Virus record (IMG/VR): IMGVR_UViG_3300020178_000002
Coordinates: 248,137-312,136 of that record
Direction: 5' to 3' (one strand)
DNA: 64,000 bases
This document shows, piece after piece, positions 1 to 64,000 of this stretch (within the stretch, counting starts at the first letter, position 1; every line of letters starts with the position of its first letter). Under the pieces are notes generated by a model, which saw nothing but the letters and a program-made list of their open reading frames with translations, was not told the origin of the DNA and did no database searches. Position numbers and translations under genes: made by a program.

Positions 1-1
1 A

Positions 2-45117: not shown

Positions 45118-45373
45118 AGCTTAAGAAGTATGCTTCTTGAGTTCCTCTTTCGAGAACTTCAACTATTGGCTTTTCATATTCAGTGTTGTATAAGATCGAA
45201 GCCCTGACATTCTGACCTCTGTTTCCTCTGTTCTGACTTTTGACTATTACAGGCCAGTTGTACTCTTCTTTGTGTTCAGAGTAAGGAGTTGCTTCATATA
45301 CTCTTTTAGCTGAGGGCTTTCCAAGTATTCTTATTAGAGTATACACTCTATCTTCTTTTAGACTGTCTAACAT
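45086..45373 (-). CDS. Hypothetical protein inserted antisense between pyrD and pyrF-pyrE
   Basis: 95 aa with GAAAGGA RBS. Confidence 0.5.
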   Translation of the reverse strand: MLDSLKEDRVYTLIRILGKPSAKRVYEATPYSEHKEEYNWPVIVKSQNRGNRGQNVRASILYNTEYEKPIVEVLERGTQEAYFLSFSQLRRYVIL

Positions 45374-45389
45374 CTAGGTGTCCTTTCGT

Positions 45390-47246: not shown

Positions 47247-47639
47247 ATGCCTGTTCGTACTATAGTAGTTATTTGCTTATCTTTATCTTATCTGATGTTA
47301 TTTGGTTTCATTGCTAGAGAACCCCAAGAGAGGTTTGTTCTATATGCTGTGCCAGAGTCTAAAGGTTGTATTTACCCAATAAACGAGATAAAGGAGACCA
47401 AAGTAGAGCTAAGGCATGTCATTCCCTATACGAAGATACATACTTGTAAATATGATGATTCCAAAAGACTCATTAGTGTTAAGACATATAACTTTGAGAT
47501 AGGCTATCAAATGAAAAAGCCCACCCATGAAATAATCTATCATTGGGTGGGCACTAGGTTGAGTAAGGTCTCTTTTCGAGAGGCTTCTCATGGTCAGGGC
47601 GAAGTTGATGTTAGAGTCCTTGAGTTTTCAAAGAAATAA
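47247..47639 (+). CDS. Membrane-anchored hypothetical protein
   Basis: N-terminal hydrophobic helix from MPVRT. Confidence 0.5.
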   Translation: MPVRTIVVICLSLSYLMLFGFIAREPQERFVLYAVPESKGCIYPINEIKETKVELRHVIPYTKIHTCKYDDSKRLISVKTYNFEIGYQMKKPTHEIIYHWVGTRLSKVSFREASHGQGEVDVRVLEFSKK

Positions 47640-48210
47640 AACCAATGATTGGAAACTTAGCCTGACCTTGTTTTCTAAGGCTTTGAGGGATATTAGCAAA
47701 TCTAAAGTCAGCACCCTCAATGATTGCACCTGTGAAATCACAGCTAGAAACATCAGCTCCTGTGAAATCAGCCCCTCGTAAATCAGCGTTTACAAAAGAT
47801 ACCTCTTTGAGAACACTATCCGAGAAATCAGCCCCTCTGAGGTCTGATCTATAAAAGCTGGCTTTCTCTGCTTCTGTCCCTGCAAAATTAGCTCCGATAA
47901 GGGTTGCTTGAGCGAAGCTCACCTTTTCTAGCTTTGCAAACTCTAAATCTAAGCTTACTCCATAAGACTCATTTAAGTTGACCTTAGAGAGTTCAGCTTC
48001 GCTAAAGGTAGCGTTTGTTAGTTCGCAATTTTTCATAACAGAGTCTTTAATGACCAGCCCTGAAATGTTTGAGTTTACGAACTGGCAATCTGTTAGATTG
48101 CATTCATAGATTCCGACATCAATTCCAGAAGAAAGTGTAAAGTCAGAGCCTGTTAAATCCTCATTTGAAGAGGACTCTAAAATTGTATTTGTGTTATCTT
48201 GGAATCTCAT
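47611..48210 (-). CDS. Pentapeptide-repeat protein
   Basis: SDLRGADFS...ADLRGADFTGAD repeats; ATG 48210. Confidence 0.88.
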   Translation of the reverse strand: MRFQDNTNTILESSSNEDLTGSDFTLSSGIDVGIYECNLTDCQFVNSNISGLVIKDSVMKNCELTNATFSEAELSKVNLNESYGVSLDLEFAKLEKVSFAQATLIGANFAGTEAEKASFYRSDLRGADFSDSVLKEVSFVNADLRGADFTGADVSSCDFTGAIIEGADFRFANIPQSLRKQGQAKFPIIGFISLKTQGL

Positions 48211-48211
48211 A

Positions 48212-48346
48212 TTAGCCCCCAAACCCTACGGGTGTCATTGCAATGCAATATCCCAAGGTAGCTAGAGCAACCCAGATTAACAGAAGAAGTGAAATTCCTA
48301 GTTGAGTGAGGAATGATTTAATCCCGTTTGCAAAAATCTTGTACAT
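48212..48346 (-). CDS. Small membrane protein (44 aa), not in ORF track
   Basis: MYKIFANGIKSFLTQLGISLLLLIWVALATLGYCIAMTPVGFGG; AAGGAG RBS; promoter motif upstream. Confidence 0.55.
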   Translation of the reverse strand: MYKIFANGIKSFLTQLGISLLLLIWVALATLGYCIAMTPVGFGG

Positions 48347-51270: not shown

Positions 51271-52656
51271 ATGTCTCTACATTTATTTATACCCTCTATA
51301 AATGAAATCTTAGCTCTTTTAATAAAAAGTCATGCTTCTTCTGGAGGCACTGTTTTGTTATCAAGGGCAGGCAAGGTTTGGAATAACCCCTCTACTAAGT
51401 CTATACTTAATGCTTGGCATCCAAAAGACATCGCAGGGAAACTACTTCAGAATTCTTTTTTAGAGCTTTGTGATGGTGGTGATGGTGGCAAAATGTCTGT
51501 GTTCATCGCCTGCTCACTGATAAAAAGCTTCTATCGGTTAAGTGTCTCAGAAGATTATCAAGAGAAGAATGTTAAAGAATCCTTGTCTGGTATTCTAGGG
51601 CAAATAAAAGCTTTTCCCTCTAGTGAAGATATTTTAATAAAAGTGGGTCTTCAGAGTGGTCTGGATATAGAGGATGTTAAAAGTGTAGCTCAATCTATCT
51701 CGCTATCTGGTGCTTCTTCTTCACACATCTCTTTAGAGAAATGGGAGGGTGTAGGCTGTGAGGTCATACAGACAGACTCTTTCCTTGCTAATTTGAAGAT
51801 ACATTCAGATAAAGAAGTCTATCTCAAGGGTGCTATGTTCGTCTTATTTCAGAAACCACTCTTTGAGGTAAAAGAGATAGTTCCAGTTATGGAATTCATG
51901 TCTTCTTTTGAAGGTAGGCCTTTAGTTGTAATAGCCCCGATGGTTGGTGGTGGAGCTCTCAAAACGATAAATCTTAATAGGAACAAAGGAGTTTTGGAAG
52001 CTTATGCTTGTGATGCACCAAGAGTAACTTGGTCAGAAGGCTGGCTTGAAGATATGGCTTCCTTTACAGGTGCAACAGTCTATAATACTTCATTTGATTC
52101 AGAGTTTAAGCCTGTGTTTTTTGGTTCTGCTTTAGAGGTAGTTTTAAACTACAATGAAATGGTCGTCACTCCTTATGATGAACATGTTGAAAGAACATCA
52201 GAGAGAGCAGACTTTCTTTTAAAAGAAGCTGAACTTTCTCCTTTCCCTCATACTCAGGATACTTTGAGGAAAAGAGCCAATGCTCTGAATGGTACTTTAG
52301 TTAGATTAAAAGTTGGTGGTGTAACAGAGTCAGAATCTAGGTGGAGAAGGGTTCTTATTGAAAAAGCTCTTATCTCAATGTCTGATGTAAATCGCTCTGG
52401 CTATGTTAAAGGTTCTATTCCCTGTTTGTATAATATAGAAACAAACAATCCAATACTAGAGAGAGCATTAAAGTCACCTTTCAATGTTGTTTGTCACAAT
52501 TTAGGTAAGGCTGTTAATGATAAAACAGTCTGGGAGTCTCCCTTGTTGTATGAGCTTTTTCCAGCTTCTCGACTTTCAAATTTGATAACAAAAGCAGTTT
52601 CAGTGGCTACCACTATTGGTTCAGTAAGTCACATTGTAGAAAAGGAAAAAAGATGA
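51271..52656 (+). CDS. Divergent GroEL/Cpn60-like chaperonin
   Basis: GDG.., RPLVVIA, LEDMASFTGATV, RLKVGGVTESE, ERALKSP, AVSVATTI. Confidence 0.7.
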   Translation: MSLHLFIPSINEILALLIKSHASSGGTVLLSRAGKVWNNPSTKSILNAWHPKDIAGKLLQNSFLELCDGGDGGKMSVFIACSLIKSFYRLSVSEDYQEKNVKESLSGILGQIKAFPSSEDILIKVGLQSGLDIEDVKSVAQSISLSGASSSHISLEKWEGVGCEVIQTDSFLANLKIHSDKEVYLKGAMFVLFQKPLFEVKEIVPVMEFMSSFEGRPLVVIAPMVGGGALKTINLNRNKGVLEAYACDAPRVTWSEGWLEDMASFTGATVYNTSFDSEFKPVFFGSALEVVLNYNEMVVTPYDEHVERTSERADFLLKEAELSPFPHTQDTLRKRANALNGTLVRLKVGGVTESESRWRRVLIEKALISMSDVNRSGYVKGSIPCLYNIETNNPILERALKSPFNVVCHNLGKAVNDKTVWESPLLYELFPASRLSNLITKAVSVATTIGSVSHIVEKEKR

Positions 52657-52964
52657 AGATTCTAAAAAGATATGAAATCCCTTTAGATGATGTAAACGAA
52701 ATTATGATGAACATAGAGTCATACCAGAGAATGCTAAATTTTTATGGGGAGTGGGTGGAGAAGCATGGGGAATATGATTATGTAGACGAGAGGGTTCGAG
52801 ACCTATCTGGCATTCTCTGTGAGTATTTGATTGCAAGAGAATATGTAAAAGAGGGTGCGAGGACATTTGGTGATGATAAGACAGTTTATGCATCTGTTGA
52901 GTTGGAGTTTAAAAAGAAGTACCCAAATCTCGAATACCCTTTTTCAAAGGTTTCAGGCAAATGA
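52653..52964 (+). CDS. Hypothetical protein
   Basis: ATGA-coupled on both sides. Confidence 0.55.
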   Translation: MKILKRYEIPLDDVNEIMMNIESYQRMLNFYGEWVEKHGEYDYVDERVRDLSGILCEYLIAREYVKEGARTFGDDKTVYASVELEFKKKYPNLEYPFSKVSGK

Positions 52965-53608
52965 TTATTACAATATTAAGAAAGCCTTTAGAGGGAAGCG
53001 TAGCTGATAATGTACTTAAACATGGTTGTGGTGCTTTAAACATAGATGCGTCAAGAGTTTCCTCTCACGACAAAACAAAAAACCACAGTCGCAAGCCAGA
53101 GGCTTCTAAACCAAAAGGCATTTATGGAGACTCAAAAGAACAAGAGACACATCAGACAAAGGGTCAAGAGATTGGTAGGTTTCCTGCTAACTTTATTCTG
53201 ACTCACCGAGAGGGCTGTGAGTTAAAAGGCACTAAGAAAATTAAAAGTTCTTCTGGAAGAGGTGCTGTGAAAAAAGAGTCCTCTGCTGAAAAGTTGGGTA
53301 ATCAAGGATATTCTTACTCTAAAGAGTCAAGAAAAGAAGGTACTGTTATGATTTGTCATGTAGATGAAGATGGGAAAGAGACAGTAGCAGATTGGGCTTG
53401 TGTAGAGGGTTGTCCTGTTAAAGAGATAGATCGACAAAGTGGTTCGATAAAGAGTGGTGGTCGCTCTGCCAAAAACTACGCAGACAGCGATTCTGATCGG
53501 CTTGTCTATGGAGGGTTCTCTGGAGTGGCGAAAGAAATACAGCCCTCAAGTGGTGGTGCTTCTAGGTTCTTTAAACAGTTTAAGAAAGAAGAATCAAATG
53601 AACCCTAA
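52961..53608 (+). CDS. Stand-alone DNA methyltransferase central segment, cassette 1
   Basis: RKPLEGSVADNVLKHGCGALNIDA...GRFPANFIL...DWACVEGCP...GGASRFFKQF; lacks DPPY and FxGxG. Confidence 0.75.
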   Translation: MIITILRKPLEGSVADNVLKHGCGALNIDASRVSSHDKTKNHSRKPEASKPKGIYGDSKEQETHQTKGQEIGRFPANFILTHREGCELKGTKKIKSSSGRGAVKKESSAEKLGNQGYSYSKESRKEGTVMICHVDEDGKETVADWACVEGCPVKEIDRQSGSIKSGGRSAKNYADSDSDRLVYGGFSGVAKEIQPSSGGASRFFKQFKKEESNEP

Positions 53609-54050
53609 GCATCTTTCTGTAAGAGTGAAGCAATGTGACCTCATAGCTTCAAACTCTCCCTGTCCAAGAAGAAAAGTAGGTGCTCTTATCATAGACCCAG
53701 ATAACAATGTTGTTATTAGTGAGGGGTATAATGGTACTCCTAGAAGTTCTGATAAGCAGTATTGTGGTGGCTCTGTCTGTAGAAGGACAGAGGATAATAT
53801 AAAGAGTGGTACTAGGAATGATGTTGGATGTCACCACGCTGAAATGAATGCAATACTAAATGCAACTAGGGTAGGGCAGTCTACTCTAGGTAAATGGTTA
53901 ATTGTAAACTGTGACCCTTGTCTCATGTGTGCAAAAGCAATTCACCACAGTGGGATAGTGAGAGTTTACTGTCCTAAAGAGTTCTCTGGGAATCATAAAG
54001 AAGGTCTAAAATATCTTCTTGAAAACAGTATTGAGGTAGAAGATTTATGA
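53598..54050 (+). CDS. dCMP deaminase
   Basis: SPCPRRKVGA, GYNGTP, HAEMNAI, PCLMC; start ATG 53598. Confidence 0.9.
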   Translation: MNPKHLSVRVKQCDLIASNSPCPRRKVGALIIDPDNNVVISEGYNGTPRSSDKQYCGGSVCRRTEDNIKSGTRNDVGCHHAEMNAILNATRVGQSTLGKWLIVNCDPCLMCAKAIHHSGIVRVYCPKEFSGNHKEGLKYLLENSIEVEDL

Positions 54051-54166: not shown

Positions 54167-54843
54167 GGGTAGTTTGTATTTCAGATACTCATAATCAGCA
54201 TGATAAAATAGATCTTCCAGATGGGGATGTTTTAATCCATGCTGGTGATTGGACAGGTACAGGAACTCAGAGACAAGTTATAAGCTTTATTCGCTGGTTT
54301 GCTAGTCAACCTCATAAGCATAAGATACTTATTGCAGGAAACCATGAAGTAACTATGGACACTGATTTCTATAAGCAAGCATGGCCTTCTTTTCATAAGG
54401 AACAGCTTCCTTATCAAGATATTAAAGATTATGTCTTGAGAGAAGAAGATATTTTCTACTTAGAAAATAGTGAAGTTGTGATAGAGGGTGTTAAATTTTA
54501 TGGGAGTCCTTATCAACCTGCTTTTGGTGGCTGGGCTTTTGGTGCTAATAGAGGATTTGAAACAAAGTCTACTTGGTCTAAGATACCAGAAGATACAGAT
54601 GTTCTTATTACTCATGGACCACCTAAAGATATAGGAGATAGGTTAGAGATTGGTGACTGTGTTGGGTGTGAGGATCTTCTTTATAGGATAAGAGAAGTTA
54701 AACCCTCACTTCACATCTTTGGTCATATACATGAGGGGTATGGTGAATATAAAATTGGAGATACTGTCTTTTTAAATGCTTCGATCTGTGATGAAAACTA
54801 TAAGTTGACAAATAAACCTTTAGAATGGGAGTTGGATAAGTGA
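54163..54843 (+). CDS. Metallophosphoesterase (MPPED/239FB-like)
   Basis: ISDTH, HAGD, AGNHE, THGPP, FGHIHE. Confidence 0.9.
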   Translation: MRVVCISDTHNQHDKIDLPDGDVLIHAGDWTGTGTQRQVISFIRWFASQPHKHKILIAGNHEVTMDTDFYKQAWPSFHKEQLPYQDIKDYVLREEDIFYLENSEVVIEGVKFYGSPYQPAFGGWAFGANRGFETKSTWSKIPEDTDVLITHGPPKDIGDRLEIGDCVGCEDLLYRIREVKPSLHIFGHIHEGYGEYKIGDTVFLNASICDENYKLTNKPLEWELDK

Positions 54844-55457
54844 TTATTACAATATTAAGAAAGCCTTTAGAGGGGAGTGTGGCAGATAATGTTTTAAAAC
54901 ATGGTTGTGGTGCATTGAATATAGATGCTTCTAGGATTAGTACCTCTGACAACCTCAATGGCGGAGCTTATGCTGAGTCTGCGAGTGAGAGACATGACGG
55001 AAAAGAGAACTGGAGGTATGAACGAGGTAAAGCAGGAGAGTATGAGCAACCGAAAGGCAGGTGGCCTGCTAACTTTATCCTCATGCATAAAGAGGGTTGT
55101 GAGTTAAAAGGAACTAAGAAAGTAAAGTCGAATGGTCATTGGACTCAAAAAGCAAATATTGGGAAGTTCTATGAGGGGGGTTGGAATCATCAAGAAATAG
55201 ATGAGGGGAACAAGATGTCTGATGAAGATGGGAAAGAGGCTGTAGCAGATTGGGCTTGTGTAGAGGGTTGTCCTGTTCAGAGTTTAGATGCCCAAACAGG
55301 CATCTTGCGTAGTGGCAAAGATGTAAATCCAACAACTTCAAAAGTTAGTGGCTTTTTTGGTCAAACAGATAACTACTATTCGGCAAAGTCGAATTATGGG
55401 GATAGCGGAGGTGCTTCTAGGTTCTTCAAGCAATTCAAGAAAGGAAATGAAAAATGA
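54840..55457 (+). CDS. Stand-alone DNA methyltransferase central segment, cassette 2
   Basis: Same four conserved blocks as cassette 1, with unrelated spacers. Confidence 0.75.
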   Translation: MIITILRKPLEGSVADNVLKHGCGALNIDASRISTSDNLNGGAYAESASERHDGKENWRYERGKAGEYEQPKGRWPANFILMHKEGCELKGTKKVKSNGHWTQKANIGKFYEGGWNHQEIDEGNKMSDEDGKEAVADWACVEGCPVQSLDAQTGILRSGKDVNPTTSKVSGFFGQTDNYYSAKSNYGDSGGASRFFKQFKKGNEK

Positions 55458-56243
55458 TAGAGATTAAAATAGGTGATTGCACCGAAAGACTAAAAGATTT
55501 AGAGGACAACTCAGTTGATGCTGTTATATCAGACCCTCCTTATGGGCTTAAATTTATGTCTAAGGGCTGGGATGATATAGGTGATGGCAGCCAGCAAAGA
55601 GAATGGCACAGAAAGTGGCTTACAGAGGCATACAGAGTTCTTAAGCCTAATGGAGTTATTAAAGCTTTCTCTGGGTCGAGAACTTTCCACCATCTGATAG
55701 CAATGATGGAAGAGATAGGGTTTGAAGACTTAAAAGTGGAGTCTTGGAGTTATGGTTCAGGTTTTCCTAAGTCTCACAATGTGAGCAAAGCGATAGATAA
55801 GTTAGGTGGTCGTCAATATAAGGCAATACCTGCTTCTGGTGTAGGGTTTATGAACTCAGATAAAGAGAACTGGAATGCTTGTCACAACCAACTCATTCCT
55901 GTCTCAGAAGAAACAGAAGAAGCTAAAGTTTGGAATGGTTGGGGTACGGCTCTTAAACCTTCATGGGAGCCTGTCTGTGTTGGAGTTAAGAAATGATTAT
56001 TACAATATTAAGAAAGCCCCTAGAAGGGAGCGTAGCAGATAATGTGCTGAAACATGGATGTGGTGCTTTGAACATAGATGCCACTAGGATTGGTTTAGAG
56101 ACTATGGTTTCTAGGTCTATGGGTAGTCTAGGGGTTATGCACGATGATAATTGGGAATCTAAACCTATTGAAGCTAAAGAAGCCACAGGCAGGTGGCCTG
56201 CTAACTTTATCCTCATGCATAAAGAGGGTTGTGAGTTAAAAGG
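55055..56243 (+). repeat. 57-bp exact repeat shared by cassettes 2 and 3 (55055-55111 and 56187-56243)
   Basis: aggcaggtggcctgctaactttatcctcatgcataaagagggttgtgagttaaaagg; all three cassettes also share tgattattacaatattaagaaagcc at their starts. Confidence 0.9.
55454..55996 (+). CDS. N6-adenine/N4-cytosine DNA methyltransferase, N-terminal catalytic part
   Basis: GDC...SVDAVISDPPYG; RVLKPNG; YGSGFPKS; WGTALKPSWEP; no SAM-binding motif I. Confidence 0.85.
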   Translation: MIEIKIGDCTERLKDLEDNSVDAVISDPPYGLKFMSKGWDDIGDGSQQREWHRKWLTEAYRVLKPNGVIKAFSGSRTFHHLIAMMEEIGFEDLKVESWSYGSGFPKSHNVSKAIDKLGGRQYKAIPASGVGFMNSDKENWNACHNQLIPVSEETEEAKVWNGWGTALKPSWEPVCVGVKK

Positions 56244-56598
56244 CTCTAAAAAAATTAAAGAGGGCAAAGCTAATAAAGATAAGGGTGGCTCATTTAGAGA
56301 AGTGGGTCTTTATGAAGATGGGTTGAAGACTAGAGCTGTAGACCATTTTCAAGGAGAAGAAGAGATAGAAGATTGGGCTTGTGTAAAGGATTGTCCTATT
56401 AGGAAACTAGACCTGCAAAGTGGTCAAGTCAAAGGTTGGTCGAGTCAAAACCATAATACTTTTAATCCATATCAAGGAAACTCGTTCCACAACTCGTCAA
56501 CCCAAAGACAAGGATATAAAGAGGGGTATAACGATGATGGAGGGGCTTCTCGGTTCTTCAAGCAATTTAAGAAAGGTAATGAAAAATGGAAGATATGA
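55993..56598 (+). CDS. Stand-alone DNA methyltransferase central segment, cassette 3 (in native position)
   Basis: Same conserved blocks; lies between the catalytic and SAM-binding genes. Confidence 0.75.
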   Translation: MIITILRKPLEGSVADNVLKHGCGALNIDATRIGLETMVSRSMGSLGVMHDDNWESKPIEAKEATGRWPANFILMHKEGCELKGSKKIKEGKANKDKGGSFREVGLYEDGLKTRAVDHFQGEEEIEDWACVKDCPIRKLDLQSGQVKGWSSQNHNTFNPYQGNSFHNSSTQRQGYKEGYNDDGGASRFFKQFKKGNEKWKI

Positions 56599-57359
56599 TT
56601 GAGTATTTTAAAGTAATGATAACCCCACCTGTAGAAGAGCCTATTATCTTAGTAGGTAAGCCCTCTGAGATTGATTATACCAGCTTCATGGCTTTAGAGG
56701 GGGCTTCCATCGTTCCCATATATAACCCATCTGTACATGGGATCATTTTACTTGGAGAACCCACAGAGGAAGAATCGAGTTTAATCAATGAGATTCTACT
56801 TCCAGGTGCTCATGTTATTCTTATCCCAGAAGATATTGGATATAAGGGTGTTATCTCCCTTGAAGACAAGGGTGGTTTAGAAGTTAGAGATGCCATTTTT
56901 GTAGCAGACGAGAACTCAGAGTTCTGCTATACTTCTAAAGCAAGTAGAGGTGAGCGAGAAGCAGGTCTTTCTAACTTCGATGAGAAAGAGGGTCATGGTA
57001 CATTTAGGGCAACTAGAGATCAAGCTATGCTAACAGGTTCTGGTAATGTTAGGGACAACAAGCGTAAGAATATCCATCCTACTGTTAAGCCAATAGAGAT
57101 AATGGAATGGTGTGCTAGAGATATAGAACCTAGCTCTACTGTTGTAGACCCTTTTATGGGGTCTGGAACAACAGGTATCGCTATGTCTAAACTACACCAT
57201 GACTTTGTAGGGATAGAGCTTAATCCTGAATATGCTAAAATATGTGAGGCGAGGATGAAGTATTGGAAACCTGTGGACACAAAGATTATTTCAGAGAACC
57301 CTGTCGAAGAAGAAGACCAACAGGTCTTCACAGGGCAAGTTTCTCTATTTGACTTTTAG
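56586..57359 (+). CDS. DNA methyltransferase, C-terminal SAM-binding part with degenerate N-terminal region
   Basis: YTSKASRGER, NIHPTVKP, VVDPFMGSGTTG, GIEL; no DPPY. Confidence 0.85.
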   Translation: MEDMIEYFKVMITPPVEEPIILVGKPSEIDYTSFMALEGASIVPIYNPSVHGIILLGEPTEEESSLINEILLPGAHVILIPEDIGYKGVISLEDKGGLEVRDAIFVADENSEFCYTSKASRGEREAGLSNFDEKEGHGTFRATRDQAMLTGSGNVRDNKRKNIHPTVKPIEIMEWCARDIEPSSTVVDPFMGSGTTGIAMSKLHHDFVGIELNPEYAKICEARMKYWKPVDTKIISENPVEEEDQQVFTGQVSLFDF

Positions 57360-58633
57360 TAGAGGTTACGCTCAAAACGTGCAGCTACTCTTTCTGCTAG
57401 CATTTCTTCTTGAGATGCTTTGCGAAGCAGGAGCTTCTTCACAGATCGACCAAGACTCATATCCATCTTTGTGGCTCTGTCGGTCTTTATTCCTCTTAGG
57501 TTAACCTTTGTGAGGTCAACACCTGTAAGGTCAGCACCATGTAGAGTAGCACCTGTAAGGTCAGCACCAGAAAGGTCTACATTTCTAAGATCAGTTCCTG
57601 TCAGATCAGCATCTTTTAGAGTAGCACCTTTTAAAGATTTTGCCTTTGAAAGGTCAGCATACTCTAGGCTAGCACCAGAAAGGTCAGCACCAGAAAGATC
57701 AGATCTTTCAAAGTCAGCACCAGAAAGGTCAGCTCCTTTTAAAGATGTTCCTGAGAATACAACTTCTGTAAAGTCACAATTAGAGAGATTAGCTCTGTCA
57801 AGAACAGCAGCACTAAAGTCTGACCCTGTAAAGTCTACACCAATAGCTTTGCAACCAGAAAAATCAGCACCATTGAACTTGGTGTTCTTTACATCAGAAG
57901 CATCAGCAAATTTCCCTCCCACATACTTAATGCCTGCAAGATTGCATCTTGTAAAGGTTGTTCCTTCTAGACCATCTTCGTCAGTAATGGTGATGCCTTT
58001 TAAGTGGGTTGAAATTAGAGTAGAGTCTTTAAAAGAAGCTATTTCATCTACTCCTGTAAATTTAACTCCTGTTAAAATGTTGTCTTGGAACTCTACACCT
58101 AAGAGATTAGCACTTGTAAAGTCTGTGGCAGTTATACCATCTGCGTTTGTAAAATCAGCACCGATTAAAGTAGCTTTTGTAAAATCTGTTCCAGTTAAGC
58201 AACTTAGTTGTAAGTTAGCACCTGTTAGGTTAGCACCTTTAAAGTCACTACCTTTTAGATTTGCACCTTCAAAATCAGCTCTGAGTAGTTTAAACCCAGC
58301 AAAGTTTGATAGCTCAATCTCGGATTCTTGGAAATTTGTGTGGCTCAGATCATTTTTCGGAATACCAAGGCTAGTAAAGTCTGTCTGGTTGAAGTTTATT
58401 TCAGAAAGATCTTTATTCTTCAGTACTCCAGCCACAGATTTAATGTCGTCAGGATAGCTGTTTAAGTATTCTTTGACTTTACCGCCTTCGAGAGCTTTTT
58501 GATAAGCTTCATCTTTTTCTCGGAATTCTTTTAGCTCTTTGCCTTGAAGAGCTGGTTCAGCAGCATACATTCTCTCCATATATGCTTTTCTTTTCATTCT
58601 CATACGAGCTTCGTAATATGATCTTCTTCTCAT
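57356..58633 (-). CDS. Long pentapeptide-repeat protein
   Basis: Many ADLSG/ADLTG repeats; basic leader; tail RKASQEEMLAERVAARF. Confidence 0.9.
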   Translation of the reverse strand: MRRRSYYEARMRMKRKAYMERMYAAEPALQGKELKEFREKDEAYQKALEGGKVKEYLNSYPDDIKSVAGVLKNKDLSEINFNQTDFTSLGIPKNDLSHTNFQESEIELSNFAGFKLLRADFEGANLKGSDFKGANLTGANLQLSCLTGTDFTKATLIGADFTNADGITATDFTSANLLGVEFQDNILTGVKFTGVDEIASFKDSTLISTHLKGITITDEDGLEGTTFTRCNLAGIKYVGGKFADASDVKNTKFNGADFSGCKAIGVDFTGSDFSAAVLDRANLSNCDFTEVVFSGTSLKGADLSGADFERSDLSGADLSGASLEYADLSKAKSLKGATLKDADLTGTDLRNVDLSGADLTGATLHGADLTGVDLTKVNLRGIKTDRATKMDMSLGRSVKKLLLRKASQEEMLAERVAARFERNLY

Positions 58634-58733
58634 TGGTTTACCCTTTTCAGTAAATGTACAGCAAAGTAGTTTTATAAATGATCTACAAAAAAGATTTTGA
58701 TAATAGGATTACTAACAGTCTTATGGAGAAGCT

Positions 58734-58922
58734 ATGATAGAAGTTATTAAAGATGTGCCTTTAAAGTGTTTTAATGATGGTAAGACATACCTTGTAAAAG
58801 CAGGTACTCAATTCCACATTGTTGAAAGAAAGGGTGTTTTTTACTTGAGATACAAGCACCTGTACTTTACTTTTGTAGAAGGCACTGTAGCCAGAAACCC
58901 ACGATTTTTTAAAAGTGTGTGA
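58734..58922 (+). CDS. Small hypothetical protein
   Basis: GGAG RBS; TTGATAAT upstream. Confidence 0.55.
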   Translation: MIEVIKDVPLKCFNDGKTYLVKAGTQFHIVERKGVFYLRYKHLYFTFVEGTVARNPRFFKSV

Positions 58923-58966
58923 AAAAGTTATATCTCACCCTCTATTATTGTATAATATAGATATGT

Positions 58967-59040
58967 GGGCCTTTAGCTCAGTTGGTTAGAGCACCCGACT
59001 CATAATCGGGCGGTCCTGGGTTCAAGCCCCAGAGGGCCCA
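58967..59040 (+). tRNA. tRNA with CAT anticodon, most like tRNA-Ile2 (lysidine type); Met not excluded
   Basis: Full cloverleaf GGGCCTT/AGGGCCC, loop CTCATAA; resembles ileX-type tRNAs; TGTATAAT promoter upstream. Confidence 0.88.
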
Positions 59041-59045
59041 CTACA

Positions 59046-59079
59046 AAGGAAGCATCTTTATGAGGGCTTCCTTTTTTTT
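59046..59079 (+). terminator. Intrinsic terminator
   Basis: aaggaagc...gcttcctt followed by T-run. Confidence 0.7.
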
Positions 59080-59096
59080 ATCTTGAGGGATGTCAC

Positions 59097-59330
59097 ATGG
59101 GAAGTACTAAACTTGTTATAGAAGAAACCACAAATGGGTGGGTGGTCAAAACACTTGATTGTGAAGGTGTGGAGATTACCTATGTTTATGAAGACCTTGA
59201 GGGTACTGATTCTTCTAGGGCTAAGGCTTTCAAGAGGTTATTGTTTGAACACTTCTCCCATGTGTTTGCTAGTAAACGTAAAGCTGGGTTAGATGTTATG
59301 GTTCTGGAGAAAGGTTGGGGAGAAGTATGA
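59097..59330 (+). CDS. Hypothetical protein
   Basis: GAGGG RBS. Confidence 0.5.
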   Translation: MGSTKLVIEETTNGWVVKTLDCEGVEITYVYEDLEGTDSSRAKAFKRLLFEHFSHVFASKRKAGLDVMVLEKGWGEV

Positions 59331-59536
59331 AAAGGACTTTATTTATTAAAAAGAATGGTGCTGAGTTCTACAAGGAACTGAGTAAAGAAGAGAGGAGACA
59401 GAAAGTCATCTCTTTAGAGGTACAGAAGAAAACTACAGCAATGCAAGTAGCTAAAGACCCTATGCTTTTGTTTGGGTCTGCTGTTAAATACAAGCGTTGT
59501 GTTGAAGCTGGTTTCTTGAGCTTCAAAGAAATCTGA
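59327..59536 (+). CDS. Hypothetical protein
   Basis: ATGA overlap; MKRTLF start. Confidence 0.5.
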   Translation: MKRTLFIKKNGAEFYKELSKEERRQKVISLEVQKKTTAMQVAKDPMLLFGSAVKYKRCVEAGFLSFKEI

Positions 59537-59574
59537 AAAAACTCCTTGTTTTAGTCTCGGCTTTGTATAATAAC

Positions 59575-59850
59575 TATGTCGGTCATGTTAGACCTTTGTT
59601 CTTTGACATTTAGAACAACTCCTTAGGGAGGCTTCCTACAGGTAAAGCTGTTGGGTTGTGTGGTATGCCCTTTCACCTCTTTGGTTAGGAGGTGTCTCCT
59701 GCTCTGTTGTTCCGTGGAGTGGGGCAAAACGGAACGCTTATCATATCTGATCTCTATTTGGTGAGATTTAGGGTTCGATTCCCACAGATGTGCTAGGCCC
59801 TCTTAAATTTAGCTCATTTTGAACGGTGTGTATCTAACTTTCGAGGGTCT
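59575..59850 (+). ncRNA. Structured non-coding leader: hairpins, H-type pseudoknot and tRNA-like element
   Basis: TGTATAAT at about 59564; no ORF; pairing blocks listed in findings. Confidence 0.45.
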
Positions 59851-59857
59851 AATTTTT

Positions 59858-59930
59858 GCTGGTGTAGCTCAATTGGCAGAGCAACTGATTTGTAATCAGT
59901 AGGTTATGGGTTCAAGTCCCTTCACCAGCT
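59858..59930 (+). tRNA. tRNA-Thr(TGT)
   Basis: GCTGGTG/CACCAGC acceptor; anticodon arm ctgat-TTGTAA..atcag; T-loop TTCAAGT. Confidence 0.92.
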
Positions 59931-59935
59931 TTTTT

Positions 59936-60007
59936 GGGTTGTTAGCTCAATGGTAGAGCACACGACTTTTAATCGTTAGGTTCTGGGTTCGAGTCCCAGA
60001 CGACCCA
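59936..60007 (+). tRNA. tRNA-Lys(TTT)
   Basis: GGGTTGT/ACGACCC; loop CTTTTAA; T-loop TTCGAGT. Confidence 0.92.
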
Positions 60008-60054
60008 CTTTGAATTTTTGCTAAAGTCATCACGCTGGTTCAAGGATAATAATA

Positions 60055-60360
60055 ATGAGCGAGAAAAAAACATATACGATAAGAAGAAAATATGGTTGGG
60101 ATGTTTACTCATACCATGTTGGTTGGAAAGAGATTGAGCTAACTGAGGAACAAATCGCAGAGGTTCGTGCTAATCCTGACTTGCTTGATGACGATGAATG
60201 GTTAGATAAAGCCTTTGATTGGGTTGATATGGATGAGGAGGAGTTGGTCACAGACTCTTGGTGTAAGGGTGGTGTTGACCAAATTCCCCTAGAGACTGAG
60301 ATTGATTTCTACATTGAGGATCTTACAGGAGAAGAAGATGAGTCGGAAGATCAAGGTTAA
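60055..60360 (+). CDS. Very acidic hypothetical protein (paralog 1)
   Basis: LVTDSWCKGGVDQIP. Confidence 0.6.
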   Translation: MSEKKTYTIRRKYGWDVYSYHVGWKEIELTEEQIAEVRANPDLLDDDEWLDKAFDWVDMDEEELVTDSWCKGGVDQIPLETEIDFYIEDLTGEEDESEDQG

Positions 60361-60664
60361 ATACGAGTGGACCATCTGGGCTCACTACGAAGGGTATAAA
60401 GAGATTGATGTTGATGAACACCCAGAGCTTTTAGAGAAGATCAAAGACAACTTTGAATCTATCGAGGACTTACAAACCGACATGAATACATGGGACTATG
60501 TTTGTGAGGATATTTGTGAGATCGAAGGTGAACATCTTGTATCTGATGAATGGTGTAAGGGTGGGGTTAATCAGATGCCTTTCAAGGTTGAACTAACCAA
60601 CATTGAATTTGATGAACTTTTACATCCAGAAGAGGATGAAGAAGATGATAAACCTAAAGGATAA
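60338..60664 (+). CDS. Very acidic hypothetical protein (paralog 2)
   Basis: LVSDEWCKGGVNQMP; start MSRKIK. Confidence 0.6.
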   Translation: MSRKIKVKYEWTIWAHYEGYKEIDVDEHPELLEKIKDNFESIEDLQTDMNTWDYVCEDICEIEGEHLVSDEWCKGGVNQMPFKVELTNIEFDELLHPEEDEEDDKPKG

Positions 60665-60933
60665 TGGTTATGGGTGAGAGAGAAGACTTGATTGAAAGAT
60701 ACAAGGAAGCAAACCTAAAGAGAATAAAATATGGCTTTTTGAGTGCTATCTGTTTTCCTGTTGGGTTTCACTTGATTTTAATCATAAGTCATATTTTAGA
60801 TATTGATCTTTTGTTTCCCATACTCTTTTTTATTGTTCTTCCTGTTTCTCAAATAGCTTTTATAGCTTTATGGTTTAGTAATCATACTCACCAGAGTGAT
60901 TTAGAAGCAAGGATAAAAATAAAGTCAAAATAA
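60664..60933 (+). CDS. Two-TM membrane protein
   Basis: Two hydrophobic helices. Confidence 0.55.
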   Translation: MVMGEREDLIERYKEANLKRIKYGFLSAICFPVGFHLILIISHILDIDLLFPILFFIVLPVSQIAFIALWFSNHTHQSDLEARIKIKSK

Positions 60934-61011
60934 TTGTTGGCTTCTAGTCCTTTATTGTATAATACATACATGAGCTTGCCTTATAGCTTAATATTAAAGG
61001 CAACTCTTTAA

Positions 61012-61083
61012 GCATCAGTAGCTCAGTGGAAGAGCAGTGGCCTTCTAAGCCATTGGTCGTAGGTTCAAATCCTACCTGATGTA
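61012..61083 (+). tRNA. tRNA-Arg(TCT)
   Basis: GCATCAG/CTGATGT; loop CTTCTAA; T-loop TTCAAAT. Confidence 0.9.
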
Positions 61084-61167
61084 CTCGACAAAGCTCTCTC
61101 CCAGTATTTAAGGTTGGATTTAAGTCCTGTTAGACATGTTGAACAGCATTGGGGCTTTGTCGTACTT

Positions 61168-61240
61168 GCACTCATAGCTCAGTTGGAAGAGCACCACTTT
61201 CCTAAAGTGGGGGTCGCAGGTTCAAGCCCTGCTGGGTGTA
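61168..61240 (+). tRNA. tRNA-Arg(CCT)
   Basis: GCACTCA/TGGGTGT; ccact-TTCCTAA-agtgg; T-loop TTCAAGC. Confidence 0.88.
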
Positions 61241-61322
61241 CTAGGTTCTCTATATTTTTTTGTAGTTTACAAGAAGCGAGAAAGAATAACTTTGCTAGAG
61301 TTGTTTAGAGAACCTAACTTAT

Positions 61323-61364
61323 ACACTTGTTAGGTTTTTGCAGGTTCGAGTCCTGTCAAGTGTT
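61323..61364 (+). ncRNA. tRNA-like minihelix (acceptor stem and T-arm only)
   Basis: ACACTTG-10 nt-GCAGG-TTCGAGT-CCTGT-CAAGTGT. Confidence 0.55.
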
Positions 61365-61367
61365 CTG

Positions 61368-61436
61368 GCTCTCCCCTACTTTATTTTTTAATCATTAGAG
61401 AAAATTAGGCAAAAGTAGAGGAGAGCTTTTTTTTTA
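61368..61436 (+). terminator. Long-stem terminator
   Basis: gctctcccctacttt...aaagtagaggagagc followed by T-run. Confidence 0.55.
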
Positions 61437-61521
61437 TTTTTCCTTTCGTGTGTCGGTATAATTAAGTTGAGCATGTTGCTCAATCTCCAAACACACACAC
61501 ACACATGAAAGGATATATCCT

Positions 61522-61725
61522 ATGGGAGATAATAAAAGGAACGCTTACGAGATCAGAGAGTCTCTTCTTGGTATGGCTATTGGCATTTTATCAGATCGAG
61601 ATTCGAGACTGCGTGAGAATGAGTACTTGAAGCCAGAAGGCAATCGTCAGCCTGTTGAAGGTTATGATGTTGATGAGGTTATCAAGATTGCTAATAAGCT
61701 AGACTCTTTTGTGAGTCAAAGTTAA
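61522..61725 (+). CDS. Small phage protein
   Basis: NAYEIRESLL...DEVIKIANKLDSFVS; GAAAGGA RBS. Confidence 0.6.
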   Translation: MGDNKRNAYEIRESLLGMAIGILSDRDSRLRENEYLKPEGNRQPVEGYDVDEVIKIANKLDSFVSQS

Positions 61726-61729
61726 TTAT

Positions 61730-61847
61730 ATAAGTGCGGTGATAGCATACAGGGTTCTACTAACTATTTTCGTATATACGACCCAGTGAGGAATAAGACA
61801 AGTTAGGAATACTCACTTACTTGCAGGTTTTAACCCTGCCACTTATA
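61730..61847 (+). ncRNA. Expanded tRNA-like RNA
   Basis: ATAAGTG/CACTTAT acceptor-like stem, GCAGG-TTTTAAC-CCTGC T-arm, about 85-nt non-canonical middle. Confidence 0.4.
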
Positions 61848-61929
61848 TTACTAGCTTACACCCCACATGGTTTTCCATGTTAGCTAGGTTCAGGTCTTTT
61901 GTTGTTGTGATCTGAATTGGGGTGACTAA

Positions 61930-62002
61930 GGACCATTCGTCTAGGGGTCTAGGACTCCAGCCTTTCACGCTGGCAACACGGGTTCAAATCCCGTATGGTT
62001 CA
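61930..62002 (+). tRNA. tRNA-Glu(TTC)
   Basis: GGACCAT/ATGGTTC; ccagc-CTTTCAC-gctgg; T-loop TTCAAAT. Confidence 0.9.
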
Positions 62003-62004
62003 TT

Positions 62005-62040
62005 AAAGCCTTTCCTATTCTTAGGAAGGGCTTTTTTTTT
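62005..62040 (+). terminator. Intrinsic terminator
   Basis: aaagcctttccta-ttct-taggaagggcttt followed by T-run. Confidence 0.75.
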
Positions 62041-62115
62041 GGCTTGTGGAAGCCTAGCTTTTATAAGTTAGGGTGGACTCACAGTGAGCCAAATACTTTA
62101 ATAGGAGAAAAGATT

Positions 62116-62703
62116 ATGAATCTTGACATTGAAAATGGCACAATTATTACTTTCCATACACAAAGAGTTGGGAAGAAAGACTTAAAAAAAGATGGTGGGG
62201 TACATCGAGGTAGACACCATGTTAAAGTAACTATGCTTGTTGGAACAGACTATAAAACTGTCGCTGGTATTGACTTTATGAAGCTCTATGAGAAAAATCC
62301 TGATGACTACTACGACAAGTTTAATTCTATGGGCATTGTTGAAGACATGGACAAATGGGCATTTAGTTGTGCTTGGCACAGCAGAAGTCTTTATGAAGGG
62401 TTGTACGAAAGCTCAAGAGGCGAAAACACTTACAATAAGCATTTTGATGTTTATGACCCACATCCTTGTGGTGTTCGTGGTGTCCTAGTCCACAAAGAAA
62501 CAGGAGGCATCTATCTTATGGGGATTTTAATCAATGAAGAGATTGTTGAAGAAGATCCTAATGGTGATGCAAGAAAGAGTACATACTCTAAAGAGCGTAA
62601 GATTGTTAGAGCTATCCAGAAAGAGTTTGGACTCGTTTCAGGTAAGTGGAGAAGCTATAAGCTTCCTGCTGGAACAACAATCAATGGTCTTGAAGCCAAA
62701 TAG
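62116..62703 (+). CDS. Hypothetical protein
   Basis: ATG 62116 with AGGAG RBS. Confidence 0.6.
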   Translation: MNLDIENGTIITFHTQRVGKKDLKKDGGVHRGRHHVKVTMLVGTDYKTVAGIDFMKLYEKNPDDYYDKFNSMGIVEDMDKWAFSCAWHSRSLYEGLYESSRGENTYNKHFDVYDPHPCGVRGVLVHKETGGIYLMGILINEEIVEEDPNGDARKSTYSKERKIVRAIQKEFGLVSGKWRSYKLPAGTTINGLEAK

Positions 62704-62714
62704 GATTATTTCAA

Positions 62715-63047
62715 ATGGGATTAGATCAAACAGCTTTCATTCGTAAAGAAGGCGAAAAAGACACTACTATAATGACTTGGAGGAAACACGCTAACCTTGA
62801 GGGCTGGATGCATGAGTTGTATCGAGACAAAGGTAACGAGGGTGTTTTTAATCAAGAAGAAGTATCTTTAACAAAAGAAGACTTAACCCGACTCATGGAA
62901 GAGAACAACGAAGGCTTAGATGAAGCCTGTGGCTTCTTTTGGGGTGTTTCTGATGAAGAAGATAAGATAAACACAACCTTATTCATTATCCAAGCTCTTG
63001 AAGCCCTTGAAAAGGGGTATGAGGTGATCTACACATCTTGGTGGTAG
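62715..63047 (+). CDS. Phage hypothetical protein
   Basis: MGLDQ...WRKHANLEGWM...GFFWG...IYTSWW, a pattern familiar from phage ORFs. Confidence 0.65.
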   Translation: MGLDQTAFIRKEGEKDTTIMTWRKHANLEGWMHELYRDKGNEGVFNQEEVSLTKEDLTRLMEENNEGLDEACGFFWGVSDEEDKINTTLFIIQALEALEKGYEVIYTSWW

Positions 63048-63089
63048 TTTATTTATAGGTCACTCTATAGAAAAGCGAAGGAGATATGA

Positions 63090-63845
63090 ATGTCTAAAAT
63101 AAAACAACTTGAAATGAGAATTGCCAGACTAGAGAAACAATCTGCAATGACTATGGAAAACAAAAACAAGATACTAGGTAAGGGTTGTTATGTAAGCCTT
63201 AGCAAAGGTGGTAACATCAAACTAGTAGAGCAGTTTCCAAAAATAAAAAGAGGTATGACTCTCAGGGTAACTGAGTGGAATCGTCTTACTTATCTGTGGA
63301 GGCTTGATAATTTTCCAGAGTTGAAATCACAAAACCTCTTTGACAATGATCTAAGGCGAAAAATTAGATATGCTGACTATGATCGAGCTAAGAAGATTAT
63401 TCAATCTAAGATTGATGAAGTCAAAAAAGAGACTTACAACAATCGAGTTAGGCATCTGAAGAAAGATTTAAAAAATCTTGGAGGAAACCCATACCCATCC
63501 AAGCTCTTTAAGGTTTTGGAAAAAAATACCAAAGCACATGAAGAAGTTAAGAAAGCTATTGAGGTAGAGCCTTATCACTATGAAGACATAGAGGCTAGAG
63601 GTAAAGACTTCTCTATAGAAGTAAGATGGGATTACTCTAAGATAGAAGCAGATGGCAGTTATAAAGACCCTTATGAGGGAATGAGTACTTTCTACACTAC
63701 AAAGACAAGAGCAAGTGCTAGGAATCTATGGTATCTGGTGAGCAGCATGGGTCATGACATAGAAGATTATACTTTAGAGGAGTTCCTTGCCTTAGCAAAG
63801 AGTAAGAGAATATCTTTAAGGTATGTTCCTAGTATTTGGAGATAG
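63090..63845 (+). CDS. Hypothetical protein
   Basis: AAGGAG RBS; leader LEMRIARLEKQSA. Confidence 0.6.
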   Translation: MSKIKQLEMRIARLEKQSAMTMENKNKILGKGCYVSLSKGGNIKLVEQFPKIKRGMTLRVTEWNRLTYLWRLDNFPELKSQNLFDNDLRRKIRYADYDRAKKIIQSKIDEVKKETYNNRVRHLKKDLKNLGGNPYPSKLFKVLEKNTKAHEEVKKAIEVEPYHYEDIEARGKDFSIEVRWDYSKIEADGSYKDPYEGMSTFYTTKTRASARNLWYLVSSMGHDIEDYTLEEFLALAKSKRISLRYVPSIWR

Positions 63846-64000
63846 TACATAGGCTCTGTTATGGAAATCTTTGAGGGTTGTTAAAATCTAGGTTTTCGAC
63901 CTCGACACCACTTTGATTCTTCTGGTGTCCAATGGAGTCTAGCTTTCCCTCTTTTCTTTTTAAGAGCCATTTCAGCTTTCATTGCTTCTGATCTGTCAGC

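Follow-up and report, generated by a model that had tools for sequence, protein, structure and literature searches.

Recombining cassettes of a split, predicted DNA methyltransferase in a jumbo phage

The stretch of DNA that was analysed (64,000 nucleotides, referred to here as the window) is the end of a 312-kb jumbo-phage genome. It carries the genes of a beta-class N6/N4 DNA methyltransferase that is split into three ORFs, with methyltransferase activity and specificity being inferred. The N module carries the DPPY motif, the M module is the recognition-region insert, and the C module carries FxGxG. The M module is present in three paralogous copies, named cas1 to cas3. Each M module has four constant blocks (A to D) and three variable segments (V1 to V3). 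The features of the locus, in window coordinates, are as follows.

52961..53608 (+), cas1, M module (215 aa), V types 1.6 / 2.7 / 3.8, separated from the rest of the locus by the dCMP deaminase and phosphoesterase genes
54840..55457 (+), cas2, M module (205 aa), GTG start overlapping the stop of the phosphoesterase gene, V types 1.1 / 2.3 / 3.5
55454..55996 (+), MT_N, catalytic half (180 aa) with motif IV DPPY, with its own variable segment at about residues 113-160
55993..56598 (+), cas3, M module (201 aa) lying between N and C, V types 1.4 / 2.1 / 3.2
56586..57359 (+), MT_C, AdoMet-binding half (257 aa) with motif I FMGSG, HPTVKP and its own copy of the D-block element (EFCYTSKAS)
52962..52986 (+), block A exact 25-mer, copy 1; the whole block A (residues 1-33) spans 52961-53059
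54841..54865 (+), block A exact 25-mer, copy 2; the whole block A spans 54840-54938
55994..56018 (+), block A exact 25-mer, copy 3; the whole block A spans 55993-56091
55055..55111 (+), block B exact 57-mer in cas2, encoding GRWPANFILMHKEGCELKG
56187..56243 (+), block B exact 57-mer in cas3; the copies are direct repeats 1132 bp apart and flank MT_N
53384..53419 (+), block C (DWACVEGCPV) exact 36-mer in cas1, identical to 55242-55277 in cas2; the cas3 equivalent lies at about 56371-56424
55407..55457 (+), block D (GGASRFFKQFKK) plus tail in cas2, holding the Shine-Dalgarno sequence and ATG of MT_N; the equivalents are 53552-53608 in cas1 (leading into the dCMP deaminase start) and 56539-56598 in cas3 (leading into MT_C)
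54939..55055 (+), V1 of cas2; the other variable segments are V2 55128-55247 and V3 55302-55406 in cas2, V1 56092-56187, V2 56260-56370 and V3 56425-56538 in cas3, and V1 53060-53173, V2 53246-53389 and V3 53444-53551 in cas1

MT_N and MT_C each matched one half of Pfam PF01555. MT_N matched positions 1-96 (54.7 bits) and MT_C matched positions 154-219 (57.5 bits), against a cut-off of 26.7. The DPPY of MT_N (residues 27-30) is invariant in an alignment of 20 N modules, and DPFMGSGTTG of MT_C (residues 188-197) has invariant columns in an alignment of 16 C modules. The tail of MT_N (WEPVCVGVKK) duplicates the head strand of the M modules. Residues 109-226 of MT_C aligned to the fused family with an hhalign probability of 99.8%, while residues 1-108 form a conserved extra domain. 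The cassettes had no Pfam hit at E up to 0.01, but cas1 matched phrog_3008 'DNA methyltransferase' (positions 2-86, E 1.4e-9) and is a paralogue of cas3 (E 1.7e-40).

The first-pass annotation had reported a 57-bp exact repeat in cas2 and cas3, a 25-bp exact block at the start of all three cassettes, and near-identical 3' ends, and all of these were confirmed. The two copies of the 57-mer are identical and their flanking bases differ (A/C on both sides). The 25-mer has 3 matches in the window, against 0 in 100 dinucleotide-preserving shuffles even with 2 mismatches allowed. The 3' pattern gcttct.ggttctt.aa.ca.tt.aagaaag holds in the three-way alignment. Moreover, cas1 and cas2 share exact runs of 34 bp (52962-52995 = 54841-54874) and 36 bp (block C), and cas1 and cas3 share 26 bp including the ATG. 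The annotated interval, 54840-56598, left out cas1. The annotation also described the sequences between the blocks as non-homologous; they differ in type among the three cassettes, but the 3' part of V2 in cas1 and cas2 (DEDGKE.VA) is homologous. Identity at synonymous sites, which had also been noted, is uneven. For block B of cas2 and cas3, 16 of 17 degenerate codons are the same, and for block A 18-19 of 28 are the same, while the saturated baseline is 0.31-0.53 in single-copy orthologues.

To examine how the locus varies, we compared it with related phage contigs (designated here by L and a number). Separate ORFs with ATGA-type overlaps and SD-like purine runs recur in about 44 contigs. 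Gene orders include NMC, MNC, MNMC, NMMNMMC and MNMNNMNC, always with one C placed last. Fused N-M-C relatives also exist (L009; more than 8000 family members), and L009 reads N-M-C in one ORF, with which N-cas3-C is colinear. Some fused relatives have two M modules in one ORF: L055 (905 aa), L067 (697 aa) and L151 (753 aa). A blastn search against the phage collection gave no match, and no cultured phage in the GenBank phage collection carries the split form. Exact 27- and 32-nt probes from cas2 V1 and cas3 V3 found only the second contig of the same phage in the viral contigs, although the first probe straddled the single mismatch to L049.

Truncated and chimeric modules exist in relatives, such as M versions of 103-107 aa, an M fused to an N tail (L007:2143-2655) and a split N in L036. 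The locus might therefore be the debris of a once-fused methyltransferase broken by frameshifts and duplications, with identity blocks that merely reflect recent duplication. However, the same ORF boundaries recur in about 44 independent contigs whose other proteins are only 45-60% identical, within-type dN/dS of the variable segments is 0.14-0.21, the variable segments of the paralogues are of different ancient types, which recent duplication would not give, and the complex is predicted with a high score (see below). Decay is thus very unlikely, and an assembly or sequencing frameshift artefact was rejected because of the recurring boundaries. We also considered whether frameshifting or ribosome hopping joins N, M and C into one chain. 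A stop codon in the M frame lies directly upstream of the ATG, no slippery heptamer was seen by eye, and the MNC order in relatives cannot give a colinear fusion.

The first-pass annotation had proposed that recombination at the constant blocks could mix the variable segments combinatorially, and the comparison supports this. Among 74 distinct M modules from related contigs, the V types combine as often as random assortment predicts. V1xV2 gave 24 combinations in 32 modules (random mean 24.7, fully linked minimum 12), V2xV3 gave 25 in 28 (24.5; 13), and V1xV3 gave 40 in 49 (42.9; 19). There are 4, 5 and 9 all-four-combination sets, respectively, and a smaller data set agreed. Constant blocks cluster by genome, while V types are shared across genomes.

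Each V segment of cas2 and cas3 has its nearest relative in a different phage. V1 of cas2 (exact runs 54927-54991 and 54993-55053) is 98% identical in DNA to L049_2743, with pS 0.04, although the groEL-like protein of L049 is only 47% identical and other members of the same V1 type show pS 0.8-0.97. V2 of cas2 scores 26-30 identical bases per 30-nt window against L117_1069. V3 of cas3 is 94% identical to L013_6521 and L028_5397, and V1 of cas3 shares a 58-nt exact run with L013_7136. The flanks score about 20-23 of 30 (about 70-77%), and the patches end inside the constant blocks. The only other contig of this phage (L010) has the same arrangement, with 2 mismatches in 9479 bp. It is not shown that shuffling goes on within this phage population today, or that all 27 combinations of the segments work.

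The proposal of recent gene conversion holds for blocks A and B. The 25-mer is exact only in the three copies of this genome, while 64 foreign modules differ at 2-9 positions. The three copies of block A are each other's nearest neighbours (9-11 differences against at least 12, over 84 nt), and block B shows 0 differences between cas2 and cas3, against at least 6 to any foreign module. The nearest neighbour lies on the same contig in 12.7% of cases, against 1.5% after shuffling (0 of 2000 shuffles reach it). The state of these blocks could also arise by import of foreign V segments into resident cassettes, rather than by conversion between resident copies. Recent conversion does not hold specifically for block C or the 3' ends, where foreign modules are as close as the paralogues. 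Block C is conserved family-wide (identical 30 nt in L014 and L016), as is block D, and the 3' block also carries the Shine-Dalgarno sequence and start codon of the next gene. The gene between cas2 and cas3 is indeed the DPPY catalytic half, so an unequal crossover would delete or duplicate it. Relatives differ in exactly such module counts and orders.

General homologous recombination fits best. The genome has a RecA family hit of 143 bits (G000:206560-207420, G000 being the genome), and this RecA/UvsX-type recombinase probably carries out the exchange. Programmed shuffling, by a shufflon, a phase-variable hsdS-type switch or a diversity-generating retroelement, might be suggested by several cassettes with sharply bounded constant blocks. 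However, all copies are direct repeats and no inverted repeats join the cassettes, the genome has no resolvase or invertase hit, and the only integrase-like hit is below the cut-off (20.2 bits) and about 215 kb away. There is no reverse transcriptase (RVT_1) hit, and variation is by discrete types, not adenine-directed point changes. Programmed shuffling is therefore highly improbable.

Alternatively, only N-cas3-C might be used as an enzyme, with cas1 and cas2 kept as an archive for gene conversion, resembling silent pilS or vls cassettes. Indeed, cas3 alone sits between N and C as in fused relatives, cas1 is separated from the locus by two unrelated genes, and blocks A and B are homogenised as expected if conversion is frequent. 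On the other hand, all three cassettes are complete ORFs with a start codon, an SD-like purine run upstream and a stop/start overlap with the upstream gene, and no truncated, start-less copies occur in the window. In six or more relatives the only M lies upstream of N (order MNC), so that position is a working one, and the V segments are under purifying selection within types. We consider the archive model unlikely.

The constant blocks are predicted to be the surfaces by which M docks onto N and C. A predicted complex of N, C and cas3 scored 0.89, against 0.35 for the best of 3 controls. That mark was reached by 58 of 80 solved complexes and 2 of 110 mismatched pairs, although these counts hold only roughly here and the score comes from the model's own confidence with shallow alignments. 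The runs agree in at least 75% of contacts and the partner's pLDDT is at least 56. The cassette residues in the interface are 1-31, 64-77, 133-143 and 185-194, which are the constant blocks only. AlphaFold models of single chains were poor: MT_C had pLDDT 48.9, and the fused homologue L009, modelled with 96 sequences, had 50.1, and about 30 across the M region. The placement of V1-V3 next to DNA therefore rests on sequence position alone. Residues 1-108 of MT_C may be a degenerate second catalytic half (GEPT in place of DPPY), in which case it is unclear how N reaches the AdoMet site. The register is plausible and the predicted secondary structure fits, but the homology is not significant (hhalign E 0.003-0.008, probability 5-11%).

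The closest solved structure by sequence is CcrM (PDB 6PBD). Residues 5-102 and 359-438 of L009 align to CcrM 15-131 and 179-259 (E 1e-21), and by this alignment the M module lies between the equivalents of CcrM Loop-45 and Loop-6E, both of which read bases (PMC6787082). CcrM has about 50 residues where this family has the N tail plus the whole M module of about 200 residues, and it is one polypeptide with a C-terminal DNA-binding domain. Since V1 to V3 lie where beta-class enzymes carry their DNA-reading loops, and exist as discrete, ancient types under purifying selection, their most likely function is target-sequence recognition. The V segments might instead be exposed loops diversified for another reason, such as escaping a host factor that recognises or inhibits the methyltransferase. 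They are absent from the predicted interface, poorly predicted, and rich in G/S/N/K, as flexible loops often are, and V2 can be missing entirely (short modules; fused-family consensus). However, the types are discrete, old and conserved, and V3 type 3.2 recurs in the distant fused enzyme L009, a pattern that suits defined binding functions better than an arms-race surface. This alternative therefore seems doubtful.

Taken together, we favour, with a probability of roughly 0.7, a model in which the identity blocks are the DNA of four conserved structural segments of the M module and also tracts of homology where ordinary homologous recombination crosses over. Such recombination has homogenised blocks A and B among the three copies in this genome and has exchanged V1, V2 and V3 independently, both between cassettes and between co-infecting relatives, so that the segments are in free assortment across the clade. 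Unequal crossover between direct repeats also changes module number and order, explaining the many architectures in relatives. It is inferred that the phage makes several methylation specificities from one C subunit and renews them by segment exchange to keep up with host restriction systems.

In the Type III mod genes of Helicobacter pylori, which also encode beta-class N6-adenine methyltransferases, variable recognition sequences (TRDs) move between genes by homologous recombination in DNA that encodes conserved flanking motifs, and TRD and non-TRD parts give incongruent relationships (Furuta and Kobayashi 2012, PMC3467074; PMC3077401; PMC3983042). Here, the enzyme is split into three genes, two internal constant blocks allow three segments to assort independently, the modules form tandem arrays, and the carrier is a jumbo phage. 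No nuclease family was found among the ORFs scanned between about 44.4 and 63.8 kb of the window, which holds nucleotide-metabolism, pentapeptide-repeat and lysis genes as well as unannotated ORFs. In Type I HsdS subunits a separate polypeptide generally carries the variable recognition parts between conserved regions and docks on shared catalytic subunits, and recombination in the conserved regions creates new specificities (PMC3874165). The cassettes have no Pfam hit to a Type I S-subunit family, and they have three variable segments and four blocks rather than two TRDs with a central and a terminal conserved region. HsdS pairs with a complete HsdM, whereas here the catalytic fold itself is divided between N and C. 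The multispecific C5-cytosine methyltransferases of Bacillus phages (SPR, phi3T, rho11s) seem to carry several recognition modules in tandem inside a single polypeptide, so that one enzyme protects against several host restriction systems, while the core here is PF01555 and the modules are separate ORFs. M.AquI and M.EcoHK31I are probably likewise assembled from separately encoded pieces, but they are probably C5 enzymes in two single-copy pieces. We found no description of a system like the present one in the literature searched.

More tentatively, this clade might run a combinatorial methyltransferase, in which one C subunit is shared by several interchangeable N halves, each with its own variable loop, and several M subunits, each a mosaic of three independently exchangeable segments. 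A single locus would then write many methylation motifs and re-programme them by recombination. It would be an S-subunit-like design evolved inside a Type II-like beta-class enzyme, with module arrays of at least 10 genes in some relatives (for example L103).

The three-way split of one Rossmann-type fold, with the junction strands duplicated on both partners, bears on how proteins become split and reassemble. If the M modules set target specificity, this locus is a natural, modular kit for DNA-sequence recognition by a beta-class methyltransferase, and small exchangeable segments (about 35-50 residues) bounded by fixed blocks could be matched to sub-sites of methylation motifs. It would show how large phages keep pace with diverse host restriction systems without carrying a whole enzyme per motif, and it would extend specificity change through recombination in motif-coding DNA from bacterial Type I and Type III systems to phage orphan enzymes.

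The record spans 312,136 bp with direct terminal repeats and is rated complete, and the window is its last 64 kb, with a G+C content of about 39%. The genes around the finding are phage-like and include an N-acetylmuramoyl-L-alanine amidase, a metallophosphoesterase and a GroEL-like protein (51271-52656, phrog_5725), which has no Pfam hit but is conserved immediately upstream of the methyltransferase locus in most relatives. Pyrimidine-metabolism genes are also present at 44407-46502 and 53598-54050, namely a dihydroorotate-dehydrogenase-like gene, an OMP decarboxylase fused to a phosphoribosyltransferase domain, and dCMP deaminase. The deaminase probably starts at the ATG at 53598, which overlaps the end of cas1. 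Two pentapeptide-repeat proteins are encoded on the minus strand at 57356-58633 and 47611-48222, and the first accounts for the dense short direct repeats detected at 57494-58290.

The first-pass annotation had described an exact 57-bp repeat, a 25-bp block common to three cassettes, and near-identical 3' ends, and all three elements are present. Positions 55055-55111 and 56187-56243 are identical over 57 bp and differ on both flanks. A 25-mer is identical at 52962-52986, 54841-54865 and 55994-56018, and none of 100 dinucleotide-preserving shuffles gave a match, even with two mismatches allowed. The 3' ends follow the pattern that had been described. Moreover, cas1 and cas2 share exact runs of 34 and 36 bp. 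The three cassettes are ORFs, and no other copy exists in the genome. The ORFs of the locus are as follows.

52961-53608, cas1, 215 aa, middle module (M)
54840-55457, cas2, 205 aa, middle module (M)
55454-55996, N, the ORF between cas2 and cas3, carrying DPPY
55993-56598, cas3, 201 aa, middle module (M)
56586-57359, C, the ORF after cas3, carrying FMGSG

N matches positions 1-96 of Pfam N6_N4_Mtase, while C matches positions 154-219. The M cassettes match the first 86 positions of phrog_3008, a phage "DNA methyltransferase" family whose later positions match C. Distant relatives encode N, M and C colinearly in one ORF of 400-560 aa, for example the 452-aa protein of contig L009. This fused family has more than 8000 members in the protein collection, and some are named adenine-specific DNA methyltransferases by their sources. 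Therefore, the window holds one beta-class methyltransferase split into three genes, with two extra copies of the middle gene. Some fused relatives (L055, 905-aa ORF; L067, 697 aa; L151, 753 aa) carry two M modules in tandem inside one polypeptide (N-M-M-C). Another fused N-M-C enzyme, from a 485-kb uncultured phage (L099, LR745208.1:22100-34690), has DPPA instead of DPPY as its motif IV, and its V3 (the third variable segment of M) resembles the type seen in contigs L037 and L043.

The junction elements are duplicated on both partners. N ends with WEPVCVGVKK and M begins with IITILRKP, while the fused protein has this strand once (PIVMARKP). Similarly, M ends with GGASRFFKQFKK and C contains EFCYTSKAS, while the fused protein has ASRFFYCPKAS once. 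Each gene has an SD-like purine run upstream, and stop/start overlaps of the ATGA type join cas1, cas2, N and cas3 to the gene before them. Interestingly, the C-terminal residues of the phosphoesterase (KPLEWELDK; end of the gene, 54805-54843) and a stretch near the end of orf103 (52898-52915) resemble the tail of N (KPSWEPVCVGVKK), and this may be a scar of N tails that travelled with cas2 and cas1.

To test whether the split is real, we scanned viral and metagenome contigs and obtained about 44 distinct contigs of the same clade, many with the GroEL-like gene upstream. In all of them N, M and C are separate ORFs. Module number and order vary and include NMC, MNC, MNMC (this phage), NNMC, NMNC, NMMNMMC and MNMNNMNC, and arrays such as MMNNNNNMNMM (contig L103) or five M in a row (contig L163) also occur. 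C is single and last wherever the contig reaches it. The MNC order cannot yield a colinear fusion by any recoding, so the pieces must work as separate polypeptides if they work at all. Chimeric and shortened modules were also identified, such as an M fused to an N tail (L007:2143-2655) and M versions of 103-150 aa that lack V2 (the second variable segment) or more. These are what unequal crossovers at the blocks would leave behind. Two C modules (L036:7644-9557 and L022:1639-3525) carry an in-frame insert of about 360 aa with Hint and LAGLIDADG matches, and thus they probably hold inteins, while one N module (L027:5238-7001) has an in-frame insert of about 400 aa with no Pfam match. A second contig of this same phage from another sample (L010) matches window 54522-64000 with 2 mismatches and has the same arrangement.

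Alignment of the cassettes defined four constant blocks: A (residues 1-33), B (GRWPANFIL..H.E.CELKG.KK.K), C (DW.C.E.CP...LD.QSG) and D (GGASRFFKQFKK). They separate three variable segments, V1, V2 and V3, of about 30-50 residues each. The His and Cys residues in blocks B and C (..H.E.C.. and DW.C.E.CP) bracket V2 and look like a zinc knuckle, and short modules and the fused-family consensus lack both V2 and these residues. N modules likewise have one variable segment, at about residues 113-160, between constant parts. It is of several types, and the type in the window was not seen in the other 19 N modules aligned.

To examine whether the segments are shuffled, we collected 74 distinct M modules, 69 of them with recognisable anchors, and grouped each segment into types by single linkage at 50% identity or more. 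This gave 19 V1 types, 8 V2 types and 19 V3 types. The number of distinct pairings is what random assortment gives and far above full linkage, and the first 41 modules gave the same picture.

Table. Pairings of variable-segment types among M modules.
V1xV2: 24 combinations in 32 modules; shuffled mean 24.7; linked minimum 12; all-four-combination sets 4
V2xV3: 25 combinations in 28 modules; shuffled mean 24.5; linked minimum 13; all-four-combination sets 5
V1xV3: 40 combinations in 49 modules; shuffled mean 42.9; linked minimum 19; all-four-combination sets 9

For cas2 and cas3, each segment has its nearest relative in a different phage. The near-identical patches are about 60-150 nt long and end inside the constant blocks, which are only about 70-77% identical in the same pairs. 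The GroEL-like protein of L049 is only 47% identical to that of the window, whereas pS for the shared V1 is 0.04, against 0.8-0.97 for other members of the same type. That exchange is recent relative to the divergence of the two genomes.

Table. Nearest relatives of the variable segments of cas2 and cas3 (contigs or their modules).
cas2: V1, L049 (98% DNA); V2, L117 (26-30 of 30 per window); V3, L014/L016 (75%)
cas3: V1, L013_7136 (86%, with a 58-nt exact run); V2, L007 (74%); V3, L013_6521 and L028_5397 (94%)

There is also evidence for homogenisation inside this genome. Among 67-69 modules, the three copies of block A in the window are each other's nearest neighbours, with 9-11 differences in 84 nt against 12 or more to any foreign module. 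The exact 25-mer occurs in no foreign module, and the foreign modules differ at 2-9 positions, mostly synonymous. Block B of cas2 and cas3 has 0 differences, against at least 6 to any foreign module, and it also shares a derived Met (FILMHKEGC) seen in that context nowhere else. Across all contigs, the nearest neighbour in constant DNA lies on the same contig in 12.7% of cases, against 1.5% after shuffling labels, and none of 2000 shuffles reached the observed value. Blocks C and D behave differently, since foreign modules are as close as the paralogues. Furthermore, block D with its tail holds the ribosome-binding site and start codon of the following gene. Therefore, the 3' identity, which the first-pass annotation had taken as part of the evidence for recent gene conversion or recombination, is family-wide conservation with an extra constraint and not a sign of recent conversion. 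The share of identical codons at identical residues in the blocks between genomes is 0.54-0.72, moderately above the 0.31-0.53 seen in the single-copy GroEL-like and C genes. More recent common ancestry of the blocks through recombination would produce this.

All copies are direct repeats. No resolvase and no reverse transcriptase was found in the genome, and its only integrase-like match is below the cut-off and far away, but it does encode a RecA/UvsX-type protein (143 bits). Exact runs of 25-57 bp are probably in the range that homologous recombination systems can use. General homologous recombination, either between copies in one genome or between co-infecting relatives, is the best-supported mechanism, while programmed inversion, a DGR and a silent-cassette system each fail a defining feature.

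The closest described process is TRD movement between Type III mod genes of H. pylori by recombination in motif-coding DNA (PMC3467074). Type I HsdS subunits and the multispecific C5 enzymes of Bacillus phages are functional analogues. Four things appear new here: the three-way split of a beta-class enzyme, the multi-copy N and M genes around a single C, the subdivision of the recognition region into three freely assorting segments, and the setting in jumbo phages. We found no description of such a system in the literature searched, and no cultured phage record in the GenBank phage collection carries the split form.

Within types, the V segments evolve under purifying selection, with dN/dS of 0.14, 0.21 and 0.18, and V3 type 3.2 of cas3 recurs in the distant fused enzyme of L009. 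The types are therefore old and functional, not drifting linkers. By sequence alignment to CcrM, the closest solved structure (6PBD, E 1e-21), everything from the N variable loop to block D lies between the equivalents of CcrM residues 131 and 179. That places it between Loop-45 (residues 119-133) and Loop-6E (172-194), which are two of the four loops that read the bases of GANTC (PMC6787082).

A three-chain prediction (N, C and cas3, with cas3 as the partner) scored 0.89, with the best of three controls at 0.35. That mark was reached by 58 of 80 solved complexes and 2 of 110 mismatched pairs, although these counts hold only roughly here, because we used our own alignments and three chains. 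The runs agree in at least 75% of contacts, and the pLDDT of the partner is at least 56. The cassette residues in the confident predicted interface are 1-31, 64-77, 133-143 and 185-194, which are the four constant blocks and none of V1-V3. In this model the first strand of the cassette pairs with C residues 74-80 and 98-105, and the other blocks touch N residues 95-117 and 156-173. Residues 1-108 of C are conserved, with an invariant HG.ILL.EPT, and look by eye like a degenerate catalytic half (LKPGAHV, EVRDAIF), but the profile comparison is not significant and the single-chain model is poor. If this reading is right, how N reaches the AdoMet site is unexplained. The prediction supports, but does not show, a picture in which the constant blocks dock the module and the variable segments stay free for DNA.

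The genome carries at least four further PF01555 methyltransferase loci (genome positions 75151-75852, 75951-76655, 95814-96443 and 247067-248200, the last reaching window 1-64), and the match at 247466-248200 holds one in-frame TAG. These loci fit heavy investment in DNA methylation. We infer that the M modules are probably exchangeable recognition subunits, and that the locus is probably a multi-specific, re-programmable phage methyltransferase for evading restriction.
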